From NCBI GenBank assembly GCA_033442325.1, contig JAWQFM010000020.1:969863-1033862 (forward strand): DNA of 64,000 nt. Direction: 5' to 3'. Positions 47,721 through 64,000 of the stretch are shown here, one piece after another. The notes beneath the pieces are model-generated. The model worked only from the letters and a program-made list of their open reading frames with translations, was not told where the DNA came from and made no database searches. Made by a program: the position numbers and the translations under genes. Position 1 is the stretch's first letter, and each line of letters opens with the position of its first letter. The stretch comes from Salpingoeca rosetta. Lineage: Eukaryota; Protista; Choanoflagellata.

Positions 47721-49061
47721 ATGAACAGCAACACAAGCGCAAGCAAGTCTTCAGCGGCTGCGACATCAAAGCAGCACAGTCAGCATGGCAAAGCAGCAGT
47801 CTGCAGGAGCGCAGCCGTCGTGGGCGGTGGCGTGGCTGGCTTAGCGACTGCCATGGCACTGCGACAGGTTGGCGTGGAGGTGGTGGACGTGTACGAGGCG
47901 TACGACGTCTCTGCCGGCGTGGCGATTGGTGCGTGGCTCACCATCGCCGTCAACGGCTTGGCGGCCCTGCGTGAGCTTGGCCTTGACAATGCCGTCATGC
48001 AGTGCGGCTTCCCATCGGAGGAGATTGAGTTCCACAGCGGCAGCGGCAAGCACCTGGGACGGATCCCAATCGGCGGCACCCTGGACGACGGCACCGTCAC
48101 ATGCACGCTTCGCCGTGCGGATCTCTACCGCGTGCTGCTGGAGGAGGCCAAGCGACGCGGCGTCAATGTGCACTCGCGCAAGAAGCTGGCCCGTATTGAA
48201 TGGCAGACGACAGCGGACGGCACAGAGACCAACACAGCGTCCACCTTGACCTTTGAGGACGGCTCGTCCGTTCCTGCCGCAGACCTGGTTGTGGGCGCAG
48301 ACGGCATCCACTCTGCGGTGCGCCAGCACCTCAACGCAGACAGGCAGGTGCAATCTCGGTTCATGGGCATGGGCAACACGGGCGGCTTCCTGCCGCACGA
48401 GGTTGTGGAGAGCGTCATGGACGCGCGCACGAAGCAGGAGCTCTCACGCGGCCTCTACCGCATGCTCTTTGGCTACAAGTGCTTCTTCGGCTACACGGTG
48501 CACCCTGACACGGGCGACGTGTGGTGGTTTGCCAACCCTCCGCTCGACCACCCCTTGTCAAAGGAGGAGGCCAAGGCCGCGGACTGGCGCGAGCGCCTGG
48601 TGACCATGTTCGCCGATGACGCCGGGCCCGCGGCAGACGTGATCCACAACACGCCCGAGCACATCACCGTTGCCAGCCAGTACGACCTCCCGCACGTGCC
48701 CGTGTGGTACCGGGGCAACGTGGTGCTGCTTGGCGACGCTGCGCACGCGGCATCGCCGTCGTCCGGCCAGGGCGTGTCGCTCGGCGTAGAGGACGCGGTG
48801 GAGCTGGCGCGCTTTGTGCAGTGCCAGACCACGGTGGCAGATGCCGTGGCCGTCTTTGTGGCGCATCGTCGCCCGCGCGCGCAGCGCGTTGTTGAGTATG
48901 GGGCACGCATGAGCAGCCAGAAGGTGCCTGGCCCCATTGGGCGCTTCTTCAGGGATCTGATCATGCCGTGGATCCTGTGGTTGGTCAAGAACCAGACGCA
49001 GGACTGGCTGTTCTCCTACCGCGCACGCATCGCAGAGAACACTGAAGAGGCCACAAAGTAG
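47721..49061 (+). CDS. Group A FAD-dependent monooxygenase (UbiH/salicylate hydroxylase-like fold), intronless
   Basis: Single 446-aa ORF with VVGGGVAGL (Rossmann), VVGADGIHSAVR (DG motif), LLGDAAHAASPSSGQG (GD motif). Confidence 0.93.
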   Translation: MNSNTSASKSSAAATSKQHSQHGKAAVCRSAAVVGGGVAGLATAMALRQVGVEVVDVYEAYDVSAGVAIGAWLTIAVNGLAALRELGLDNAVMQCGFPSEEIEFHSGSGKHLGRIPIGGTLDDGTVTCTLRRADLYRVLLEEAKRRGVNVHSRKKLARIEWQTTADGTETNTASTLTFEDGSSVPAADLVVGADGIHSAVRQHLNADRQVQSRFMGMGNTGGFLPHEVVESVMDARTKQELSRGLYRMLFGYKCFFGYTVHPDTGDVWWFANPPLDHPLSKEEAKAADWRERLVTMFADDAGPAADVIHNTPEHITVASQYDLPHVPVWYRGNVVLLGDAAHAASPSSGQGVSLGVEDAVELARFVQCQTTVADAVAVFVAHRRPRAQRVVEYGARMSSQKVPGPIGRFFRDLIMPWILWLVKNQTQDWLFSYRARIAENTEEATK

Positions 49062-49675: not shown

Positions 49676-50649
49676 ATGGCACGGCAGCGGTGTTTGCTGT
49701 GGCCGCTGTCATCGCCATGCCGCATCACCGCCTCCTGCGTCCACCTTCTCTTTGCTTTGCTTCTGCTGCTGTTGAGCGCACCGGTTCTGACGCCCGCACA
49801 AACCACACCCATATCCACAACTGCAAGTGCAACTGCAACTGCAACCACCACCTCGAATACGACAACGACAACAACAACTGTTGCGTTTTGGCACTGTGCG
49901 AGCTCGACATGGCCCAACGGGGATGAGGATACGCTGGGAGTGTTGGCTGACATGGCGCTGAAGCACGTGCTGGCCGATGAAGCCACGTTGGTCAACACGG
50001 TGGACATTAGTGTGCGGCGTGCAGCGGCGTGGTGGCGTGACGCCGACGCGCAGTTTGGCGGATCTTCGCCAAACATCATCGTCTTAGCGTGCCCAGAGAT
50101 CCCTCTGCGCTGGCAGCTGCTGCTTGCCGACTTGCTCGTGGGCAGCAGCAGCAGCTCCTGCGCGCTGGAGACAATGGGCGCGGACGTGGACGTGGCGCAT
50201 CTCGTGCCGTCTGTCTGCTTCTTCACCCTGCGAGCGGATTTCACCTCCATCGCCGACACCGTGATTCGAGCAGCCTCTCCGATCCATCCCGTGTTCATGC
50301 TGGTGGACGACAACCAAGTGGAGGCTGTCCTTGACATTCGGCGCACCATCCTCGCCGAAAGCAACAACGATGACGACCCAGAGGTTCCCAAGCGTGACAC
50401 CACCATGCCCATCGTGCCAGTCAGAAACTCGCTCACCGAGACGGTCGATGCCCTGGTCATGTCCGTACCAAGTTCCGTTGTTCTGCTTGCTCGCCCAAGC
50501 GCCAACCGTGCTGCCCACCTCAACATCGTCGCCACCACCCTCGATGCCAACAAGTCCGTCTTGTGTGTGTGTGTGTAGTGTGTGTGTGTCTGTGTGTGTG
50601 TGTGTGTAGTGTAGTGTGTGTGTCTGTGTGTGTGTCTGTGTGTGTGTGT

Positions 50650-50995: not shown

Positions 50996-51972
50996 CAGGG
51001 TGACGCTGGCTGTCCTGGCATGGAGTGAGCTGGACATTTTGAGGAGCGTTTCGGTATCACCCAACACGTGCTCGGTTCATCTCTTCGATATCGACTGTAG
51101 CCTCGCAGAGAAAGCGACGGCCATCTTGCGCGTGCCCGTGCCTGCAAGCACGAACCCAAGCGCGCCAGAATGGCAACAGTTCCTTTCACAGTTGCTCTCT
51201 GATGACGAGAGGGGCAACGCATCCACATCCGCCACGGTTGCTGCCGCATGGGACGCGGCACAGATTATCCAGCAATCCATCACAGCGACAGCACAAGATG
51301 ACCGCCCAGGAAGCAGCGGTCGCTTGCAGTTTGTGCTCAACTCCACTGGCTTTGATACGACATTCACAGGCCGCGTGCACCTCCGCACTCTCCCCTCCTC
51401 GTCATCGTCATCATCGTCATCGTTTCCGTCACCACTGGCAGCCGTGCCCTCGGCCATGTGGATTGCCACAACAGCCGCCTGCGCTCTACCAGACGCAGGC
51501 GGGGTGTGTGCCGCGCAATTCAAACGCACGTCTGTTAACGCCACAGGCACAGCACTGCTGTCGTCGACGCTTGCGCTGTTGCCGCAGCGGCTTGTGCTTC
51601 GTCTGGCTGTGGCGCTACCACTGACTGTGCCTGGGTACAGCACTGGCCGCAGTGCAGAGTGGCGGGCGGCAATCGACGTGGCAGCAGAGGGGCTGGGCCT
51701 CACCAACAACGGGCTCGTCACCATCAAGACAACCGTCTTTGACACCAACGCAGACTGCTTCCAGGTTTGCGGGCGTTGGGAGAGGGGGTAGGGGATGGTC
51801 GTGTGGGTTTGTGTTGGTATTTTTTTTTGTGTTGTAAGAGTGTGCGCGTGCGCTGATGTTATAATGATGGCAACATGTGATGAGATTGCCCTTCCTCTTT
51901 GCAATATTGTGAACACTCATGCATATTCATACATATTCATACATGTACGTATACGCACGCACACACTCACTC

Positions 51973-52004
<32 letters not shown>

Positions 52005-53063
52005 ACAAACACACACAAACACATACACACACTCACAGCTTGGGCGCACGATTGGGCAGCAGTCGTTCCACGCGGTGATTGGTGCCGTGCGGTCGTCGTG
52101 TTCTGGTCCGCTCTCCCTCGGCCTTCGCCCATATGGCGTTCCTCAGGTCTCCTTCGCATCCACGGCCCCATCCCTCTCCAACACCACGCGCTACCCGACG
52201 CTGTTCCGCATACCGCCGTCCGACCTCCACCAGGGGCGTGTGCTTGAGCTGCTGTGTCGCCGCTTCAACTTCACGCACGTGGCCGTGCTCATGCAGGACG
52301 ACACATACGGGCAGGGCCTCGCTGCTGCGTTTGCAGACGCGTTCCTCGCCAACAACGGCACCATCACATTCAGGGGCACCATCCCCGCAGGCGACCAGCC
52401 CCACTCGCTGTTTCGCGGTCTCCTGCAGCAGGCGCGCGCGTCCGGGACCAGCGTCATCCTCACGTTTGCTCTGCTGGTCCCGACACGACAAATGTTCGCA
52501 GCGGCCGAGGAATTGGGGATGCTGGGGGAGAACTGGGTGCATCTCACCGTCGACGCAAACACGTTTGCAAACACCGCGTAAGCTCAAAGCACCGCGTTTG
52601 CCTTGCATCGGCTCTGCTTTTCCTTGGCCTCGTGGCTCAAATGTACCGATGGAATTGTGCGCATGGCGTGATTCTGCTTATGTGTTGTGTGCTTCTTCGT
52701 TTGTGATCAGGCACAACGTCATGCTTCCTCACATCCCATACAACACAACACACACACACACACACACACAATCGATTCATGAAACAGGGCGGAGGACACG
52801 GTGATTGATGGTGTGGTTGGGGTGCGTCCACGCACTGGTGCTGGCGCTGTCTATGAAGGCTGGCTTAACTACACCAGCGCTTCAGGCGTACGTAATGGCT
52901 GCACATGCCTTGCTTGTTATGCTATGTTTGTGTTTCGCATGAGAAACACTTGACGTCCACACTCACGCACACGCCATCAATTGATCTTGTGCTTCTCACG
53001 CTTGTGTTGCTCACACCGTTGTGCATGCACGCATACACCTTCTCCCTCCCTCTATGTGCGTGC

Positions 53064-53150
<87 letters not shown>

Positions 53151-53636
53151 CGTGCGTGTGTGTGTGTGTGTTTGTGCGTGTGTGTGCACAGGTTGGAGAG
53201 GCATTTCGGCGCCGCTTCTCGCTGCCCACCGGTGATGGCGGCTTCAACCCAAACACGTGAGTGATCGTGTTGTGGCACTACCCCGAGTAATATTTTTTTT
53301 TGTGAATTATGCAAGTCGTGCTTCACTTGCACACCGCTCTCACTTGCGCGCTTCCACCTGCACACTCACACGCTCACATGCGCTCACACGTTCAACCTGC
53401 ATTGTTTCACACACCCTTTCAGTTACGTCCCCCACAGCCTGGATGCGGTGCAAGTGCTGCATGTTGCTGCAACGCGTGCTGTGGAGAGCAAGGCAACCCT
53501 CTCCACCTTCCCGTCGGTCTCCCTCGTGCGCACGAGTGTTCTCCATGAGTTACAGGCCATGACTGACCCTGCGCTCGGATTTCGCGGATCAACGAGCTCG
53601 AACGTGCGCCGCAACCACTGTTGCATTGCTGGATAC

Positions 53637-53679
<43 letters not shown>

Positions 53680-55758
53680 TGTGTGTGTGTGAATCTTTCT
53701 TTGTTTAAATGTGGGTTTGTATGTGCATGAGTGGACGAATAATGCCTTGTTGTTCTGCTTGCACTCATGCAGCACACACACACACACATACACATCACGT
53801 CTGCGCATGGCATCAATGCAGGTGTACTTCTCGCCCGAGGGCGATGGGCGCATCGTGTATTCAATTGCAAACGTCGCCGACAACCTCCTCCTTGGCGTTG
53901 GTGTTGCAGATGAGGTCGAGTCGCGTCTGCGGCTTTCGCTGCAGCAGCCAATTGTCTGGGGTGGTGGGAAACCTGTGCCGCCATCCACATTCTCCGTCGT
54001 CAGAAGGTATGCTGGAGTATGTGTCTGTATGTGTGTGTGTTTGTGTGTGTGTGTGCGCGCGTCTGTATGTGTGTGTCTGTATGTGTGTCTATATGTGTGT
54101 CTGTATGTGTGTTTGTGCATCTGTGTGTGTCTATGATGGAGTGGGAAAGCAAGACTGTCGTTGCACCGCCAACACGTGCGCAATCACTACGTGCGAGTTC
54201 ATCTGTCTCACAACCTACCATCACCACCACCATCATCAATCACCCCCACCCTCCCCCTTTCGAAGAACCATCACGGTTGCGTGCCTTGCGCTTGTGGATG
54301 AGAGCGAGCTTGAGGACGAGTTGGCAGCGGCCTGCACGTGGTCCGCGGGTATCGTGTCCAACCTCAACAACATCGACGTCACCGCCAGCATCATCACGCG
54401 TGAGACGGTGCTTGGTGCAGAGGAGGCAGGTAGCGCCCACACCTCGCTGTTGTCGCTGGAAGCACACATGCGGTTGTGCAACAGGACGCAGGAGTATCTT
54501 CTCAATGCCACGCTTGAGAAGGATTTGGTGGCTGTTGTGGGCGTTGTGCCCTCGCTCTGTCAGCAGGACTGGGCGCCGCAGCTCACCCTCTTGGGGCTGC
54601 CGCAGTTTGTCGTGTCATCCTTTCCTCGCCTCAACCCTTCACCATCAACAACACCGCCAACAGCGTCACAGTCGTCACAGCAAGCGGGCACGGGCAACAG
54701 TACAAGCACAACGGGTAGTGGTGGTGATGACGATGATGATACCAGTGGTGTCGGCGGTGATGGTGGCTTCAATGACGCAGGCGCCAATGACGATGATGGT
54801 GCGACGCGCCAGTCGCCGCTGTTCCTGCTCGATGGCAGCGCGCATCTTCACATTGATCAAGTGCTCCTCGTCCTGCGCAACAACAACTGGACCCGCTTCT
54901 CTGTGCTCTGCCACAATACCCTCGTGCCGCACACGCAGGAACTGATGTCAGTCGCCCGCAACCACGGCTTCAACCCGCTCGGTTTCACACCGGCGCCAGA
55001 GGCCGCCACACACAACAGCACGGCACTGCAGCTCCTGATGCAGCGTCATCGCACCCTTGACGCAAGCATCACCATCGTCCTCGCTCCCGACTTTCTCCAC
55101 GCGGACGCTTACTTGCGGGTGTGTGGGTGCGTGTGTGTTGTGTGTGTGTGTGTGTGTTGTGTGTGCTTATGTGTGTGTGTGTCAGCTTTGCGGTTTCTGC
55201 TCTTTGTGTTGTATTTGAACTTGCATCGTCTGCAGATGCTTTGCCCTCACGAAGTCCTCATTGTTGCCATCATTCTCACCTCATATGACCACCTCAACTG
55301 CACTTTGTCGCTTCTCTGTACTTAGGCTGCAGAACGTGCCTTCATCACGGGCGAAAATTGGGCGTGGATCCTCGCTTTTGGTAAGAAGCAACTGCTTTGG
55401 TCGGCATGCTTGCAAGCAGCAAATACATTGATTCCCACGGCCTGCACAACCCTTTCTTCTTCAACTGCTATCAGCAACATACATTGTCCGCAATCACAAT
55501 CATACACGCGTCAACAATTTACACGCACTCACGCACAAACACACACACACACACACACGCATACACGACGTGATGCTGCGCAGGGAGCTGGCGTGGCATC
55601 CACTTCAGTCGCACTGTCACCTTTCGCGATGGTGCGTGTACATGACATGTACGCTTGCTTCTGCTGGCTTTGTGTGCTGACCCGAGTTAACGTCTTGATC
55701 GCCGCTAGACCAGTGCTGGTGATGTTATGCTGTCCATCGCATCAATTCCACCACCACC

Positions 55759-55798
<40 letters not shown>

Positions 55799-57264
55799 CC
55801 AACACACACACACACACATCCGAACACACGCATGGCGCTAACTCCCAACCCCCAACTTGCTCACATCTCAACACACACGCGTGTACGCCACCATGCGCAG
55901 CTGTTGTTGTGCTGAGTCCGCCTTCAGGCAGCGGCATGGCATTCCAGAACTTCCTGCCGAGCACGTCCACGTCTGCTGGGCGCCTCTTCTCCTTCTCCTT
56001 CCAGTCAGCGGGGATTGCAGGCGACATTGGGCCCTCGCTGCTGTCGCTTCGCGTGCATGACGGCATGCTGGTGCTGGCCCGAGTGCTTCAGGATGCAGTG
56101 GAGCGTCGACTGATTGACTACCGCCAGTCCCCTGCTGACCTCCGCGCTGTCATCGTGCACGAGACAAATGCCGCCCTTGACAGCAACCACAAGCAGCAGA
56201 ACTGCGATGAAGACGGTGGTTTGGGTTTGCAGCTCACGTCTGGCCTGTGTGTCTCGCGCGCAGACAACTTTGGCCGCGTGCACGACGTGCACACGACTCC
56301 CACAGCCAGCGCCAACAGCGCCAACAACATCAACACCACCCACACCACCACCACCCACACCACCACCACCCACACCACCACCACCCACACCACCAACAGC
56401 ACCGTTCACGAGCTGCCCATGATGACAGCTGATACCGTGACGGTGCTGGATCCTGGTACGCAGGTGCTGAACGTTGGTGCCGGCGTGTTCACGGAAGCAG
56501 GGCGCATTGCGGGCGGCCGCGTCACCATCAGCAAGCGCATCATATGGGGTGCTGGTGCCCTGCACCCGCCCAGCGATGTGCCCGTGCTGGTGGCGGAGGT
56601 GCTGGTGAAGTATGTTGTCATTGCACCGCTCTCCCGTGCGCTGACGGAGCAAGAAGGGCTGCTATACGACCAGCTGGCTTCCATTTCCACCATTGTTCCG
56701 TCCCTGAACCAACTGACAGGCTTCTCCGACACGCTGACAGTCCGCATTTTGCCGGTGCGCCTCAATGTGGACGCTTGTTCCTTCCTCTCCCCGCCAATGC
56801 AGCCGGACAATGCAGCCGACATCTGGGTTGTGGTTGGTCCGGAATCATGCATCCTGTCCATGGGGCGCATGGCGCGCCGCTTCCACCAACCACTGATGGG
56901 CGTGGTCACTGCGTACGACATTGGGCTGTCGCCGCAAGACTCAAACCTGCTGCAACAATGGAGCATGCCTGCAAATGCGTCTCAGGCCGCCAACAGGCCA
57001 CAGGCGCGTGACGTGACGAGCGGTCGTGAGGATAACGTGCGTGAAGGTGCTGCGGGCGCCCGTGGAAAGCCATCGCCAATGACGCAACACCGCAGATCAA
57101 CAGACACTGCTAAATCACCACACACACCTGCGAGCAGCAGCAGCAGCAGCAGCCGCAAGCACGGCAACAATGAGGGCAGCAGAACCAAACGCAACAACAA
57201 CAACAACAGCAACAACAGCAACAACAAGACCCTCAAGCTATCAACCATCATGCACCAGAACACC

Positions 57265-57349
<85 letters not shown>

Positions 57350-59034
57350 GCAGCAGCAATGACGGCAGCAACAGCAGTGACGCTGCTGGCCACGGCGACC
57401 AATCGAGTGCGCCAGGGGGCGGGCGAGGAAGAGGCCGCCACACTCGTAACAACAGGAGGCGTGGCTTCATGCGTGTGTTGGCGGCAGTGACGCACCGCAA
57501 CCGCAGCAGCCAGAGCACGACCACGGCAGCCCCCACCACCACCCCCAGATCAGCCACCACTGGCAGCGGACCAAGCAGTGGCAGCACGCTGGCAAGATCG
57601 GCATCCATGACTGGAATGGCAACAGGAAGTGGTGGCAAGGATGGCGCGAAACAAGGCGGTGGCGTGTGCAAGGAGCTTGAGGAGTTTATGCGGGAAGCGA
57701 GCGTGCTGTGTCAGATGAAGGACAAGAATGTTGTCGGTTTCATTGGCGTGTGCACGACGCTGCACCCGTTCCTCCTGGTCACGGTGTACTCTGCAAAAGG
57801 GTCACTGCTGTCTCTGCTTCGCGAGCGCAAGGAATCTCTCAATCCACTTCCGCTGTGGGGAAAACTCATGATGGCGCGCGATATTGCTCGCGGCCTGCGC
57901 ACCGTCCACCAGAAGGGATTCGTGCACCGGTGGGTCTAAGGTTGTGTTTGTGTGTTTGTGTATGTGTGTTTGTTTGTTTGTTTGTGTTTAATTTGTTTGT
58001 TTGTTTATGTTTATGTTTATGTTTATGTTTGTGTTTGTGTTTGTGTTTGTTTATGTTTGTGTTTGTTTGTTTGTTTGTTTGTTTGTTTGTTTGACGGACG
58101 ATGTATCCACCTTGTCAATTCGGCTTCAACTCACAATTCGCATGTTCTGCTTCATGCTCTACTTGTTTTTTTTCGTCGACGGACAGTGATATTGCTGCTC
58201 GCAACATTCTCGTGGATGAAGACTTTGTTTGCAAGGTTTGTTGGTGTGCGGGTGCACTCTGTGGTGAACAAGACCTTGGTCTTGTGGGGTTTGTGGATGC
58301 AACCATAGTTTCCTTTGTCACTTCATTTCGTGAACACACTTAGTAACCTTGTCTTGCATCCACGCACGCGCATCCGCCTACACTCATCACACCACCAACA
58401 CCACCTTCATCACGAACACCAACACCACTCCGCGTCTGGACTTTTCAGGTCGCTGACTTTGGGCACGCGCGTGCGAAGACCAACGGGCAGTGCCGCGTGA
58501 CGGATGATCGTGTTGCTGTTGCGTGGACCGCACCGGAAGCACTGGACACGCGCGTATTCTCCGAGCAGACAGACATCTGGTCATACGGTGAGTTGTGTGT
58601 GTACGCACGCAAGTGGTTATGTACATGTGTGTGCCGTTTATGTGTGTTTGTGTGTGGACGTGTGTGTGTGTATGTGTGTGTGTACACGTGCACGTACATG
58701 TGTGTGTGTGTGTGTTGTGACACGCTTGCTTTGTGGTTGGCAACATGTCACCTGCTGCTAATTTAATCCTCCTTCAACAACACTGGTTCCTGTTTCATCG
58801 TCCCTCCGTCCCCCCCCCCCCCCCTTGAAAGGCGTGACGGTGTGGGAGCTGTTCAGCGATGGCACGATGCCGTACCTTGGGCTCAAGAACTCCACCATCT
58901 TCCGCCTCCTGCAGAAGGGGCACCGTCTCGGCAAACCAGACGGATGCCCGCGCGACGTCTACATTGTACGATGACATGGCAATGGGGGCAGGTTCAATGG
59001 GGTTGCTTTCACACTCTTGCTGCACACACGCGCG

Positions 59035-59097
<63 letters not shown>

Positions 59098-61413
59098 CAC
59101 ACACGCACACACACACGCACGCACGCACACTGCACACACACACTGCACACATCGCTCATCTCACGTTCTGCGCTTGCTGGTTGACCCGTGTTCTGGTCCA
59201 CAGCTGATGCTGGCGTGCTGGGCGACGGATCCGAGCGAACGACTGTCGTTTGCCGAAACATGCGACATGCTCGACACTGGTGCGTACACATAGTGAATTG
59301 GAGACAGATACAGGTTACAAAGATGTGTCCGTGTTTGATAGGGGAGAGCACAACCACGAACACTGTGACCCATGAAACTCACATAACCCTCAAACTCACA
59401 CTTCAACACACCCACTCACCAACACTCCCCAACACATGCACGCAATCATACACAGCACTGCAAGGGGCGGAGGTCGCGCCGATGGTGAACGAACAGATGC
59501 AGGTTGTGGAAGAGAATGTGGAGGCGTGGTTGCGACAGAGCCAGGCCTCAGCCACCTCCAACACTGACGGTGGTGATGGTGGCGATGGTGGTGACGATGA
59601 TGACAACGGTGATGGTGATGATCGCGGCCATGGGCGCACGGACGGCGAATGTGGATGCCATGAGGATAGCGGCACTGCTGGCACCAACACGGGCGAGAGC
59701 AGCGGCAGCGTGAACCGCGATGAGCTCTTCTATGCGGGCAGCGGAGGCGCACGCAGCAGCAGCACCGTTGCAAGCGAGGGCATGAAGCGCAACGCTTCCA
59801 GTTGTGTGTCCTTGCATCGCGAGAAATATCATCCCCACCTTCACCTCCCTGGCCTTCGCCATGATCTCTCACGCCGCGGCACAGCAACGCCAAAGGCGCT
59901 CTTGAACGTGCACCTGCAGATCCCAACACGCGAAAGCAACGCATCCAGTGCTGGTTCCAGCAAGCGTGGAAGTGCCGTGCAGCTGCACCCTGATGTCAAG
60001 CAATCACCGCCTCACGACTTTGATCGCCACGCATATGTGGATTTGTTTGAGACGCGCGAGACTGTTGTTGCCAGCAACAGCTCTTCACACAACGCAAGCC
60101 AGGTTGGTGGTGGAAGACTGTGCGTGTGCACGCTCGTGTGTATGTGTGTGTGTGTGTATACGCTTGTGCACAGCTGAGCTTCCTGTTTTGCTGCCTTTGT
60201 GTGCTCCGCACAACGTTTGATCTACCTTACTGGTGGTGATGCTTGTCACTTACCCTGCTGCGACGTTATCGTCCGTGTGTTCACTGCTCCTGTTGTGCGT
60301 GTGCGTGTGCGTGTGCGTGTTGCGCCATTGCGTCTGATAGCGGTCCTCTCAGGCGGTGGAACAAGAGGAGAGACACGACGCGACTTCAACGGAGGAACGC
60401 AGCGATCGCGCACAGTCGCAGCAAGTCATTCGCGTAGAGACTGAATCAGCTGATGATGATGACGACGATGGTAGCGATGATGAGAACAGCGATGGTGTTG
60501 GTAGTGATCATGATGCTGCTCGGCGTCCTGCCAGCCGTGATGATCGCGACGGACGGAGGAAGAGCAGTGTTGCCGGTACTGGACAAATTGCGATTGTGGC
60601 TGTTGAAAGCGAGGAACACAAAGACGCCAGTGACAGCGACAGCGATGAGCTGGACGTTGATGACATGCTGACAGCAACAACACCAGCAAGCAGCAGAGGC
60701 AAGCTGGACACCATTGACGAAAGCAGCAGCGATGGTGACATCAGCCGTGATGGCGAACACACGCAAGGCAACTGCAGTGGGGTGCCGAAGTCAAGGAGCC
60801 ACAGGGAACAGCACCAACGCCGCCAACACGGAGTGGATTTCAGCTTCTCGCGGCACCCGTTTGTGAAGACGAATGCAGTGGTGAGCGACTCTGCTGCTTC
60901 CAGCTCCACACTCGCCAGCGTCATGTCAGTGGCTGCACTGGCCACTGCGCCTGCTGACAATGTTGCTGCGACGTCCCCTGATGATGTGGATGGCGGTGAT
61001 GTGCGTGGCGATGATGACGAGTTGTCTTACGCTGCAAAGGACGCGAGGGCGAGCAGTGCATCTCTTTCACTGATGCAGATGCACACGGATCACGTCACGC
61101 CCGTGCGGTATGCCCGATCAATGCCGCATCACACGCCAGCGGCGCAGCAGAAGCAGCAGAAGCAGCAGAAACAGCGCAAGCGGCGACGAAAGCAGCAAGT
61201 GCCGACGCTTGGCAAGTCAGCAAGCGATGGGTCCATGTCGGCAAGGCCACTTTCTTCGGCAGTGGAGGTGGATACGCCCGTGCTCGCGTCGATGCTGCAG
61301 CAGACGCTGCACGACAGCTCACAACGTACGCGATCAGGTGTGTTTGGTTTGGTTTGTTTGTTTTGGTTTGTTTGTGCAGTGTTGCGATGCACTGTGGCTC
61401 CTCGTGTGTCAGA

Positions 61414-61494
<81 letters not shown>

Positions 61495-62572
61495 CACTCA
61501 CTCCTGTTGATCCATTTCTCTCGCAACATTCACAGGTCGGACGCTGGGTCCTCGCCAAGCCACCGTCGCCAAGTTGATGGCCGCACGAAGCAGAATGACG
61601 TCCAACATACCCCTCACCAGAGCGTGAGTGCATTTCTTGCGCGTGTGGTTGTTCGTGTGTGATATACTTTTTGTGTTTTGCACGTACATGATGGACATGA
61701 GAGATGGGAGAGGCTTGCATGGACCACTGATATGAGATCTGTGTCATCGTGTGACTTGACGTTTTGTTTCTCATGTAATTTGTATCTTGCTGGTTCTGCT
61801 CCCCCTCGGCTGTGTCTTCCACGCCGCCGAATCCAGCGACATGATGGCAGAGGTGCGTCGGACACGTTGATCGTGTCAGCAGCTCATTGTACATCATGCG
61901 CATGTATGCACATTGTGGTGTCCTCGTCTGCTGGAACTTGTCGAGCCCGCCCCCTCCACCTCCAAACCACACCGCCACCGTTGCTGAGTGTCACTACAAC
62001 AATTAAACACACCCAATACATGCTCGCACACGTGCTCACACATCCTTACACGCGTGCTCGCTCGAACACACACGTGCACACATGCACCGATGTGACAGCT
62101 GGAGATGACGGCCTTTGCGAAATCGGACGACAGCACGGAAGCGCGGCGGCGGCGGATCTCTGGTCCGGAATCGCCAATCATGATGGAGAGACCAGCGCTT
62201 GCACGCATGCAGGACTGGATGCGACAGGCAACTCTGAAGGAGGAGGAGGCGGAGACAGAGGATGACGACAGCAACAACAATGGGGACAGAAACGATGGTG
62301 GTGTGCGTGACAACGGTGGTCGGGATGGAGGAGGTGATGTTATGCCTGGCGAGGCAAATAGCAGCGAGCGCAGAGAGGAAGCAGAAGTAATCGAGATGAA
62401 CGAAGTGTTTGACATTCAGAATACACCCAACGGCAAGCCCAACAGCCCTCAGCAACAACAACAGCAGCAACAACAACAACAGCAGCAGCAACAACGCCGC
62501 CAGCCCTCTCCTCTGATGCAACAGTTGAATGAGAGCGCGCTGTCAACATCGTATCAGGTGTCCCTGTGCTGA
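49676..62572 (+). CDS. Receptor-type tyrosine kinase with signal peptide and tandem Venus-flytrap (ANF-receptor/PBP1) domains; long disordered C-tail
   Basis: Hydrophobic N-terminus [18 protein letters not shown]; VFT motifs [51 protein letters not shown]; kinase EEFMREA, FVHR|[28 protein letters not shown]|[23 protein letters not shown]. No TM segment or kinase subdomains I-II were found (see findings). Confidence 0.75.
57190..57360 (+). repeat. Coding (AAC)n repeat encoding poly-Asn
   Basis: Directly visible aacaacaac runs in frame. Confidence 0.9.
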
Positions 62573-63429: not shown

Positions 63430-64000
63430 CTATGCGCTCGTTTCTGTGTCGATGTCAATGTAGCAGATTTTGAAGTGTGGGCGTGTGAGCAGTCACGAAG
63501 GAATCCCACAGCAGCAGTGAGTGTGCGTGTGTGTGTGTGTGGGGGGGGGGGTGCTGGGACAAGGGTTCGGGCGAATAACATGAAGAAGACAATATCATCG
63601 TATGGGGAGAGGGTGTTGTATGTGTCATCTCAACGTTGCACAGCACGCACTTACCCGCCAATTCCGCAAGCTCTTCGCCAATGTCCACCAAAACCTTTGG
63701 AAAATAAAACCACGCAGGCGAGGTGATGAGAGGATGAGGTGGGAAAAGAGGACAACAAGTGACAGACCCACAGCAAACGACAACACGGACGAAGAAATGT
63801 CACCGTCACACAAATACACAACGTCAAGCACACATACACACGCACACACACACACACACACACAATATCATGCACACACATACATACACACGCACACACA
63901 CACACACCTGGTGGACCATGTGCACGGATGGCCGGTCTGCACGATTTGCCTTCCAGCAGTCCACCATGAGCTCCCACAACTCATCCGGGCACATGTCGGG
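63430..64000 (-). CDS. 3' end of a second protein kinase, probably tyrosine-kinase type (gene continues beyond window)
   Basis: Reverse strand 64000-63909: PDMCPDELWELMVDCWKANRADRPSVHMVHQ (subdomains X-XI); exon ~63654-63693 VLVDIGEELAELA; probable last exon ETSA* ending at 63430. Confidence 0.75.

Follow-up and report, generated by a model that had tools for sequence, protein, structure and literature searches.

Venus kinase receptors (VKRs) are receptor tyrosine kinases (RTKs) of invertebrates whose ectodomain is a Venus flytrap (VFT) module resembling that of class C G-protein-coupled receptors (GPCRs), and they are activated by amino acids, chiefly L-arginine (PMC3703292, PMC4026697). In 2013–2014, the same authors pointed to VKR-like architectures also in the choanoflagellates Salpingoeca rosetta (RTKS) and M. 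brevicollis (UTK12) (PMC3703292, PMC4026697). Fairclough et al. (PMC4054682) report five RTKS genes in S. rosetta, and ANF domains are named by Suga et al. in a figure legend on tyrosine kinase families of ichthyosporeans and corallochytreans (PMC4342544). Here, we describe a gene of this class in a window of 64,000 nucleotides from S. rosetta (assembly GCA_033442325.1, contig JAWQFM010000020.1, positions 969,863 to 1,033,862 of the forward strand); all coordinates below refer to this window. The kinase peptides and coordinates of the gene were not found in the part of the per-gene kinome table of Fairclough et al. that was compared. The existence of VKRs contradicts a statement in a preliminary description of this DNA, namely that animal RTKs do not use VFT ectodomains.

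We conclude with moderate confidence that the locus is the S. rosetta orthologue of a tandem-flytrap RTK, which has recently been crippled or repurposed and does not function as a receptor kinase. Genes of this class have been described before; a tandem array in which one pocket is preserved adds modestly to what is known. Flytrap receptor kinases tie the sensing of nutrients or small molecules directly to phosphotyrosine signalling, and since they occur in the closest relatives of animals, they are relevant to the beginnings of this connection. What is new is that the choanoflagellate version is tandem with a single pocket preserved, that eight related VFT-kinase sequences retain the full alpha-amino-acid signature apart from minor substitutions, and that the copy in the genetically tractable S. 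rosetta appears to be without the parts needed for signalling.

Flytrap and kinase exons in a single gene model

The window is eukaryotic in character, with short exons split by introns rich in (CA)n and (GT)n. The closest full-length relative of the gene is a complete open reading frame (ORF) of 2385 residues in a transcript of Microstomoeca roanoka (P0006). It encodes a signal peptide, an N-terminal unit, three flytraps of which only the first has an intact pocket, a transmembrane (TM) helix and a complete tyrosine kinase; the ANF_receptor match covers residues 411–756, the TM helix lies at approximately 1706–1725 and the complete PK_Tyr domain at 1758–2015. With this relative as a guide, 15 exons of the S. 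rosetta gene were traced on the plus strand, beginning with an ATG at 49676 and reaching the end of the tyrosine kinase domain at 59279; together they give 2036 codons without a single stop. All splice junctions that were checked are GT-AG, and the sequence across each junction matches the M. roanoka orthologue. Exon translations were searched one by one, while the joined translation was used only for stop counts, hydropathy and length. An exhaustive search with exon 3 found no identical protein.

In GenBank (GL832974.1, assembly GCA_000188695.1), where the gene was located as the annotated neighbour of an intronless upstream gene at 47721–49061, there is one gene starting at window position 49676 with a product of 2625 residues. 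Thus, the flytrap and kinase exons share a single gene model, which is already public. The association of the two sets of exons, on which the preliminary description depended, is supported by this single product, by the single ORF of the M. roanoka orthologue and by the single genomic ORFs of two environmental homologues. Enumeration of GT-AG solutions produced eight models of exactly 2625 residues, in which the large exon 55901–57929 is read through and plausible tail exons are added. Our model is in this respect consistent with the public one, which falls short of proof. The low-complexity exons of the C-terminal tail (approximately 59456–60119 and 60403–61507, plus strand) were fitted to the annotated length and are tentative, and the cytoplasmic tail has no significant similarity to that of M. 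roanoka. A model that reaches 2625 residues ends through a GT-rich hydrophobic stretch and a (CA)n tract (THTHTH) at 61380–61507 (plus strand). Instead of a membrane anchor, the annotated C-terminus at this position may represent an artefact.

An amino-acid signature in the second ectodomain unit

The second ectodomain unit, VFT2, had been placed at 51590–54010 and credited with the amino-acid-binding signature of class C GPCRs. We traced the unit from approximately 51588 to 54006 over six canonical GT-AG junctions. It starts within exon 2 (50999–51764, plus strand), which matches P0006 residues 245–445 and is bounded by splice sites. The core is encoded by exon 3 (52039–52577), and the second lobe and the end of the unit by exons 4 to 7 (52788–52887, 53192–53256, 53423–53603 and 53822–54006), all on the plus strand; the latter exons are colinear with P0006 residues 614–810 and are joined by GT-AG junctions that keep the frame.

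Exon 3 matches the Pfam family ANF_receptor (PF01094) with an E-value of 1.3e-32 and a score of 113.6 bits (cut-off 25.4 bits) over profile positions 52–214 of 353, and a scan of the whole genome with this profile gave 109 bits at the position of VFT2. The nearest solved structures to exon 3 are flytraps of class C GPCRs, with E-values of 1.7e-15 for T1R3 and about 1e-13 for mGluR6, mGluR8, mGluR3 and mGluR4. A profile of nine related flytraps matched mGluR7, mGluR6 and mGluR4 over the full domain at about 1e-35. The fold was tested on the orthologous VFT2 of M. roanoka, which is 58% identical to that of S. rosetta over exon 3. The AlphaFold model had a pLDDT of 84 and a pTM of 0.84, and its top Foldseek matches were CaSR and mGluR2/3 (E about 1e-23, TMq about 0.72). 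From this model, VFT2 is predicted to have the bilobed alpha/beta fold of a flytrap.

In mGluR1, the glycine moiety of the ligand is held by residues S165, T188, D208, Y236 and D318, and the class C motif comprises eight residues. The five VFT2 positions that correspond to these contacts with the alpha-amino and alpha-carboxyl groups are occupied by Ser, Thr, Asp, Tyr and Asp, all of them in exon 3 and on the plus strand. The equivalent of S165 is encoded at 52093–52095, within an 11-residue stretch at 52072–52104, and the equivalent of T188 at 52162–52164, in the peptide FAST (52153–52164). D208 corresponds to the Asp at 52222–52224 in PPSD (52213–52224), Y236 to the Tyr at 52306–52308 in DDTYG (52297–52311), and D318 to the Asp at 52552–52554 in LTVDAN (52543–52560). 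The peptide quoted in the preliminary description is thus present, with the five residues at aligned positions.

Alignments paired the first four residues with S147, S170, D190 and Y218 of CaSR, and with the matching residues of mGluR6 and mGluR8. The last Asp lies two columns off E297 in the pairwise alignment with CaSR, and aligns with the Asp of the GSD motif only at the level of the family profile. The comparison covered eight related VFT-kinase sequences, drawn from five named species of choanoflagellates and from two environmental sequences. None of the eight deviates at Ser, Thr or the first Asp; three have Trp in place of Tyr, and one has Asn in place of the last Asp. Visual reading of the aligned sequences indicated that the neighbouring units are without the signature positions, except for the Ser in VFT3. 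The retention of the pocket residues in VFT2 and its eight relatives, and their loss from the neighbouring flytraps, points to selection on the pocket. The alignments and the model support the assignment of VFT2 as a class-C-like flytrap with the full alpha-amino-acid signature, and from the residues at these positions we infer that its ligand would be an amino acid or a close derivative. None of the results speaks for the sensing of bacterial prey, which the preliminary description had also suggested.

This assignment must be weighed against the alternative that VFT2 binds another small ligand, such as an ion, a peptide or a modified amino acid, or none at all, the residues being conserved for structural reasons. 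The flytraps of CaSR and T1R have similar backbones, are the closest structural matches and respond to ions, sweeteners or peptides, which speaks for such a possibility. However, all five contact positions are retained, also in the eight relatives apart from the minor substitutions, whereas flytraps next to VFT2 in the same protein have lost them. We therefore regard another ligand, or none, as rather improbable.

Degenerate flytraps on the C-terminal side and the N-terminal unit

VFT2 is followed by two further units, which had been described as more degenerate and VFT-like. VFT3 occupies 54266–56571 (plus strand), with exons at 54266–55118, 55326–55380 and 55584–55631 and the first part of the large exon that starts at 55901, and it matches P0006 residues 789–1250. 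Comparison with the VFT2 family by hhalign gave a probability of 99.5% and an E-value of 6e-23 over 392 columns. VFT4 of the relatives is a full flytrap by the same method (99.7%, E 2e-26). In S. rosetta, only its first 135 residues or so are encoded (56572–56982, plus strand); the tblastn alignment ends at P0006 residue 1368, corresponding to window position 56919, and homology to the orthologue ceases near WSMPANAS (56959–56982). The motifs noticed near 53950 and 56540 as marking the ends of two units are 11 residues long and are located at 53951–53983, the end of VFT2, and at 56539–56571, the end of VFT3. Both VFT3 and VFT4 are degenerate and probably serve as spacers or dimerisation modules.

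The loops of VFT3 contain low-complexity insertions that are specific to S. rosetta in comparison with M. roanoka (54560–54760 and 56180–56420, Asp/Gly-rich and Thr/His-rich). Microsatellite-driven expansion inside coding sequence seems to be common in this gene.

The N-terminal unit, U1, is encoded by exon 1 (49676–50562, plus strand) and the first part of exon 2. Exon 1 comprises the start codon, which is that of the GenBank model, a hydrophobic N-terminus resembling a signal peptide, and the first part of U1, with a tblastn match to P0006 residues 26–222. The idea of U1 as a fourth flytrap found no support: it had no match in Pfam or the PDB and no hhalign signal beyond the overlap with VFT2. 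A single-sequence AlphaFold model of U1 was uninformative (pLDDT 35), and the proteins that resembled it most by language model were periplasmic binding proteins (0.95), with few features in common. The tandem array that had been proposed, with three to four units, accordingly holds for the family as three flytrap-homologous units together with the N-terminal unit.

Absence of the transmembrane helix and the kinase N-lobe from the assembled copy

The tyrosine kinase domain is encoded from helix alphaC to its end by five exons on the plus strand (57670–57929, 58187–58235, 58449–58587, 58832–58965 and 59204–59279). It is 64–76% identical to P0006 residues 1792–2017 and retains the motifs HRDIAARN, DFG and APE. 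However, the match to the PK_Tyr_Ser-Thr profile covers positions 43–258 only; positions 1–42 are absent, and with them the Gly-rich loop and the VAIK lysine of strand beta3. Without these elements, the kinase remnant would be unable to bind ATP.

The tblastn comparison revealed that P0006 residues 26–1368 and 1792–2017 align colinearly with the window. The intervening residues 1369–1791 have no counterpart in the window, and only weak matches to other kinases elsewhere in the genome of 55.4 Mb (68 contigs). What is missing is the remainder of VFT4 together with the TM helix, the juxtamembrane region and strands beta1–beta3 of the kinase. In this assembly, approximately 230 in-frame low-complexity residues thus stand in place of some 400 residues of the relatives. 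In agreement with this, no hydrophobic 19-mer, and hence no TM helix, was found outside the N-terminus in the 2036-codon model.

The replacement is a linker of 687 bases at 56983–57669 (plus strand), rich in Ser, Asn, Thr, Gly and Arg codons and including (AGC)7 and approximately 33 units of AAC. Its coding frame is free of stops, as compared to 9 and 4 stops in the other two frames, and its GC content is 0.58–0.65, as compared to 0.49 in the introns of the same gene. The right flank continues in frame straight into helix alphaC without passing through beta1–beta3. A repeat like that of the linker (57130–57360) occurs as (AGC)n/(AAC)n arrays with 74–100% identity at 50 or more other loci in the genome; it is the repeat alone that is common, and not the flanks. 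We also considered whether the linker is a decayed remnant of the TM and juxtamembrane segment. A MAFFT alignment was suggestive of this, but shuffling was significant for only one of seven homologues (z 3.6, 4 of 500), and an HMM comparison yielded no score.

Thus, the proposed wiring of the flytraps to phosphotyrosine signalling stands in so far as the kinase exons are part of the same gene model, and fails for the copy as assembled, which has neither a TM helix nor the first 42 positions of the kinase profile. Judged from its predicted protein, this copy as assembled cannot act as a receptor kinase. Its most likely product has a signal peptide but is without a TM helix, and the VFT2 of this product could still bind a ligand.

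Biological lesion or faulty model

We consider it fairly probable that the lesion is biological, and ascribe a limited chance to a fault in the assembly or annotation. Several observations weigh against the former. No other exon is damaged, and the state of the remaining kinase part, with its conserved catalytic motifs and 64–76% identity to M. roanoka, is unexpected for a kinase that has long been dead; these features fit either a lesion of very recent date or sequence that is missing from the assembly. The linker contains a pure array of about 33 AAC units, of a kind found at no fewer than 50 loci, and assemblies can collapse at such arrays. Furthermore, the density of stop codons in the introns of this gene is low (0.017 per codon), so that an open frame over approximately 215 non-repeat codons is only moderately unlikely to arise by chance (about 0.03).

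Some of these points also speak for the explanation that the gene is an intact tandem-flytrap RTK, as had been proposed, and that the reference assembly or the exon reading of 56983–57669 is wrong. In that case, the real genome or mRNA would encode a complete VFT4 followed by the TM helix and the N-lobe of the kinase. This explanation draws further support from the full architecture of the closest orthologue and two distant homologues, from the coincidence of the break with long microsatellites common throughout the genome, from the intact state of every other junction, and from an intact single-flytrap paralogue kept by S. rosetta (XP_004995117.1). However, the only run of N in the window is a scaffold gap of 100 N at 11256–11355, and there is no assembly gap within the gene; none of the 68 contigs contains the missing segment. 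The unique sequences on both sides of the microsatellite are exon-like in GC content and open in the coding frame, the right one entering helix alphaC directly, and the annotated length of 2625 residues is reachable with the linker read through. An intact gene behind a faulty sequence or exon reading appears unlikely to us. A different explanation, that the locus consists of two genes or transcripts, one for a secreted multi-flytrap protein and the other for a truncated kinase, and that the annotated model is a merge of them, would account for the lack of a TM helix between the two parts and for the in-frame Met codons that the linker contains shortly before the kinase remnant. Yet the coding frame runs between the parts without a stop, GenBank models one product, the orthologues are single ORFs with the same order, and a kinase that begins at helix alphaC would be non-functional as well. 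We regard such a division as very improbable, and retain the interpretation of a single tandem-flytrap RTK gene that has been crippled or repurposed.

Under this interpretation, the intact form consists of a signal peptide, the N-terminal unit, three ANF_receptor flytraps, a single TM helix, a tyrosine kinase and a disordered tail. If it works as VKRs and class C receptors do, VFT2 would be closed by an amino acid or a close derivative, the closure would re-orient the receptor dimer, and the kinases of the re-oriented dimer would trans-phosphorylate each other. In S. rosetta, the replacement of a discrete segment by in-frame low-complexity residues would have removed the TM helix and the kinase N-lobe.

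Relatives and comparison with known receptor systems

In each of two distant environmental homologues (P0030 and P0033; one from a Tara Oceans scaffold and one from an SRA assembly), one uninterrupted genomic ORF encodes three flytraps and a TM helix and continues into the start of the kinase. All three flytrap units of P0030 score above the Pfam cut-off. The TM helix is thus present in P0006, P0030 and P0033 alike. Among solved structures, the complete P0006 kinase is best matched by Eph, Abl and EGFR. Further tyrosine kinases of this flytrap subfamily, with one flytrap each, were identified in S. rosetta, S. urceolata, Hartaetosiga balthica, M. roanoka and S. infusionum. The intact S. rosetta paralogue of this type, XP_004995117.1, has 989 amino acids, and its exon-sized matches in the genome are 73–97% identical, mostly about 90% or more. 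A profile scan of the S. rosetta genome identified at least six ANF_receptor loci. The intact paralogue or the M. roanoka protein is a better experimental target than the gene studied here.

The architecture of the family resembles that of VKRs from Schistosoma, insects and Nematostella in the class-C-like flytrap, the single TM helix, the tyrosine kinase and the conserved key Ser of the pocket. It differs in several respects. VKRs have one flytrap, whereas this family has three and an extra N-terminal unit. All five signature residues are kept here, whereas VKRs show strict conservation of the Ser and weaker conservation of the other four. Descriptions of the VKR kinase liken it to the insulin receptor, in contrast to the best solved matches obtained here, and no metazoan VKR was found among the kinase-bearing proteins in the best 150 flytrap matches. 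In addition, the S. rosetta copy differs from VKRs by its lack of the TM helix and the kinase N-lobe. The single-flytrap kinases of choanoflagellates share a flytrap of the same subfamily, in which Ser, Thr and Asp of the signature do not vary, and their tyrosine kinase is related. These proteins combine just one flytrap with a clear TM helix and an entire kinase domain in 800–1400 residues, as compared to 2385–2625 residues in the tandem form.

Class C GPCRs (mGluR, CaSR and T1R) are closest in solved sequence and structure, and share the positions that contact the alpha-amino acid. However, neither the cysteine-rich NCD3G domain nor a seven-transmembrane domain was found in any exon translation or in the orthologue, and the output module here is a kinase. 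Natriuretic peptide receptors and other receptor guanylyl cyclases have an ANF_receptor ectodomain followed by a kinase-like domain that is possibly catalytically dead, which is a likeness to the present gene. In contrast to these, the kinase here has the tyrosine-kinase motif HRDIAARN, and the flytrap is nearer to class C receptors than to receptors of atrial natriuretic peptide (ANP). A receptor guanylyl cyclase architecture was ruled out, since the downstream open frames at 59185–62569 gave no cyclase match.

On a bolder reading, which we consider less probable, some unicellular marine eukaryotes, with M. roanoka as at least one choanoflagellate among them, would possess a distinct family of tandem-flytrap RTKs, with one ligand-competent class-C-type amino-acid pocket ahead of two decayed flytraps. 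Amino-acid-to-phosphotyrosine signalling in this family might have an origin independent of animal VKRs or pre-metazoan, and the S. rosetta gene might have turned naturally into one for a secreted array of flytraps that has no TM helix and carries the remains of a dead kinase.

The top of the similarity searches was crowded by multi-flytrap matches annotated as 'CASR protein, partial' in Polypterus senegalus (P0001–P0005). These models have 2200–3900 residues and 5–10 flytrap matches each, with NCD3G in the one that was scanned; they look like merged tandem receptor genes and were discarded. Two proteins of the amoebozoan Mastigamoeba balamuthi (P0076 and P0099) combine flytrap-like domains with protein kinase domains, and the flytrap-kinase combination may have arisen several times. 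Long multi-flytrap proteins are also found in other protists, for example in Rhodelphis marinus (P0018).

Neighbouring genes

The intronless gene just upstream (47721–49061, plus strand) encodes 446 residues with a match to the Pfam family FAD_binding_3 (flavin monooxygenase type), and its GenBank annotation is exactly this ORF. It is unusual among its intron-rich neighbours. At the end of the window, an open frame on the minus strand (63824–63994) encodes a fragment resembling a tyrosine kinase C-lobe (WELMVDCW, RPS). From its translation, a further kinase gene would lie here in the opposite orientation and continue past the end of the window.

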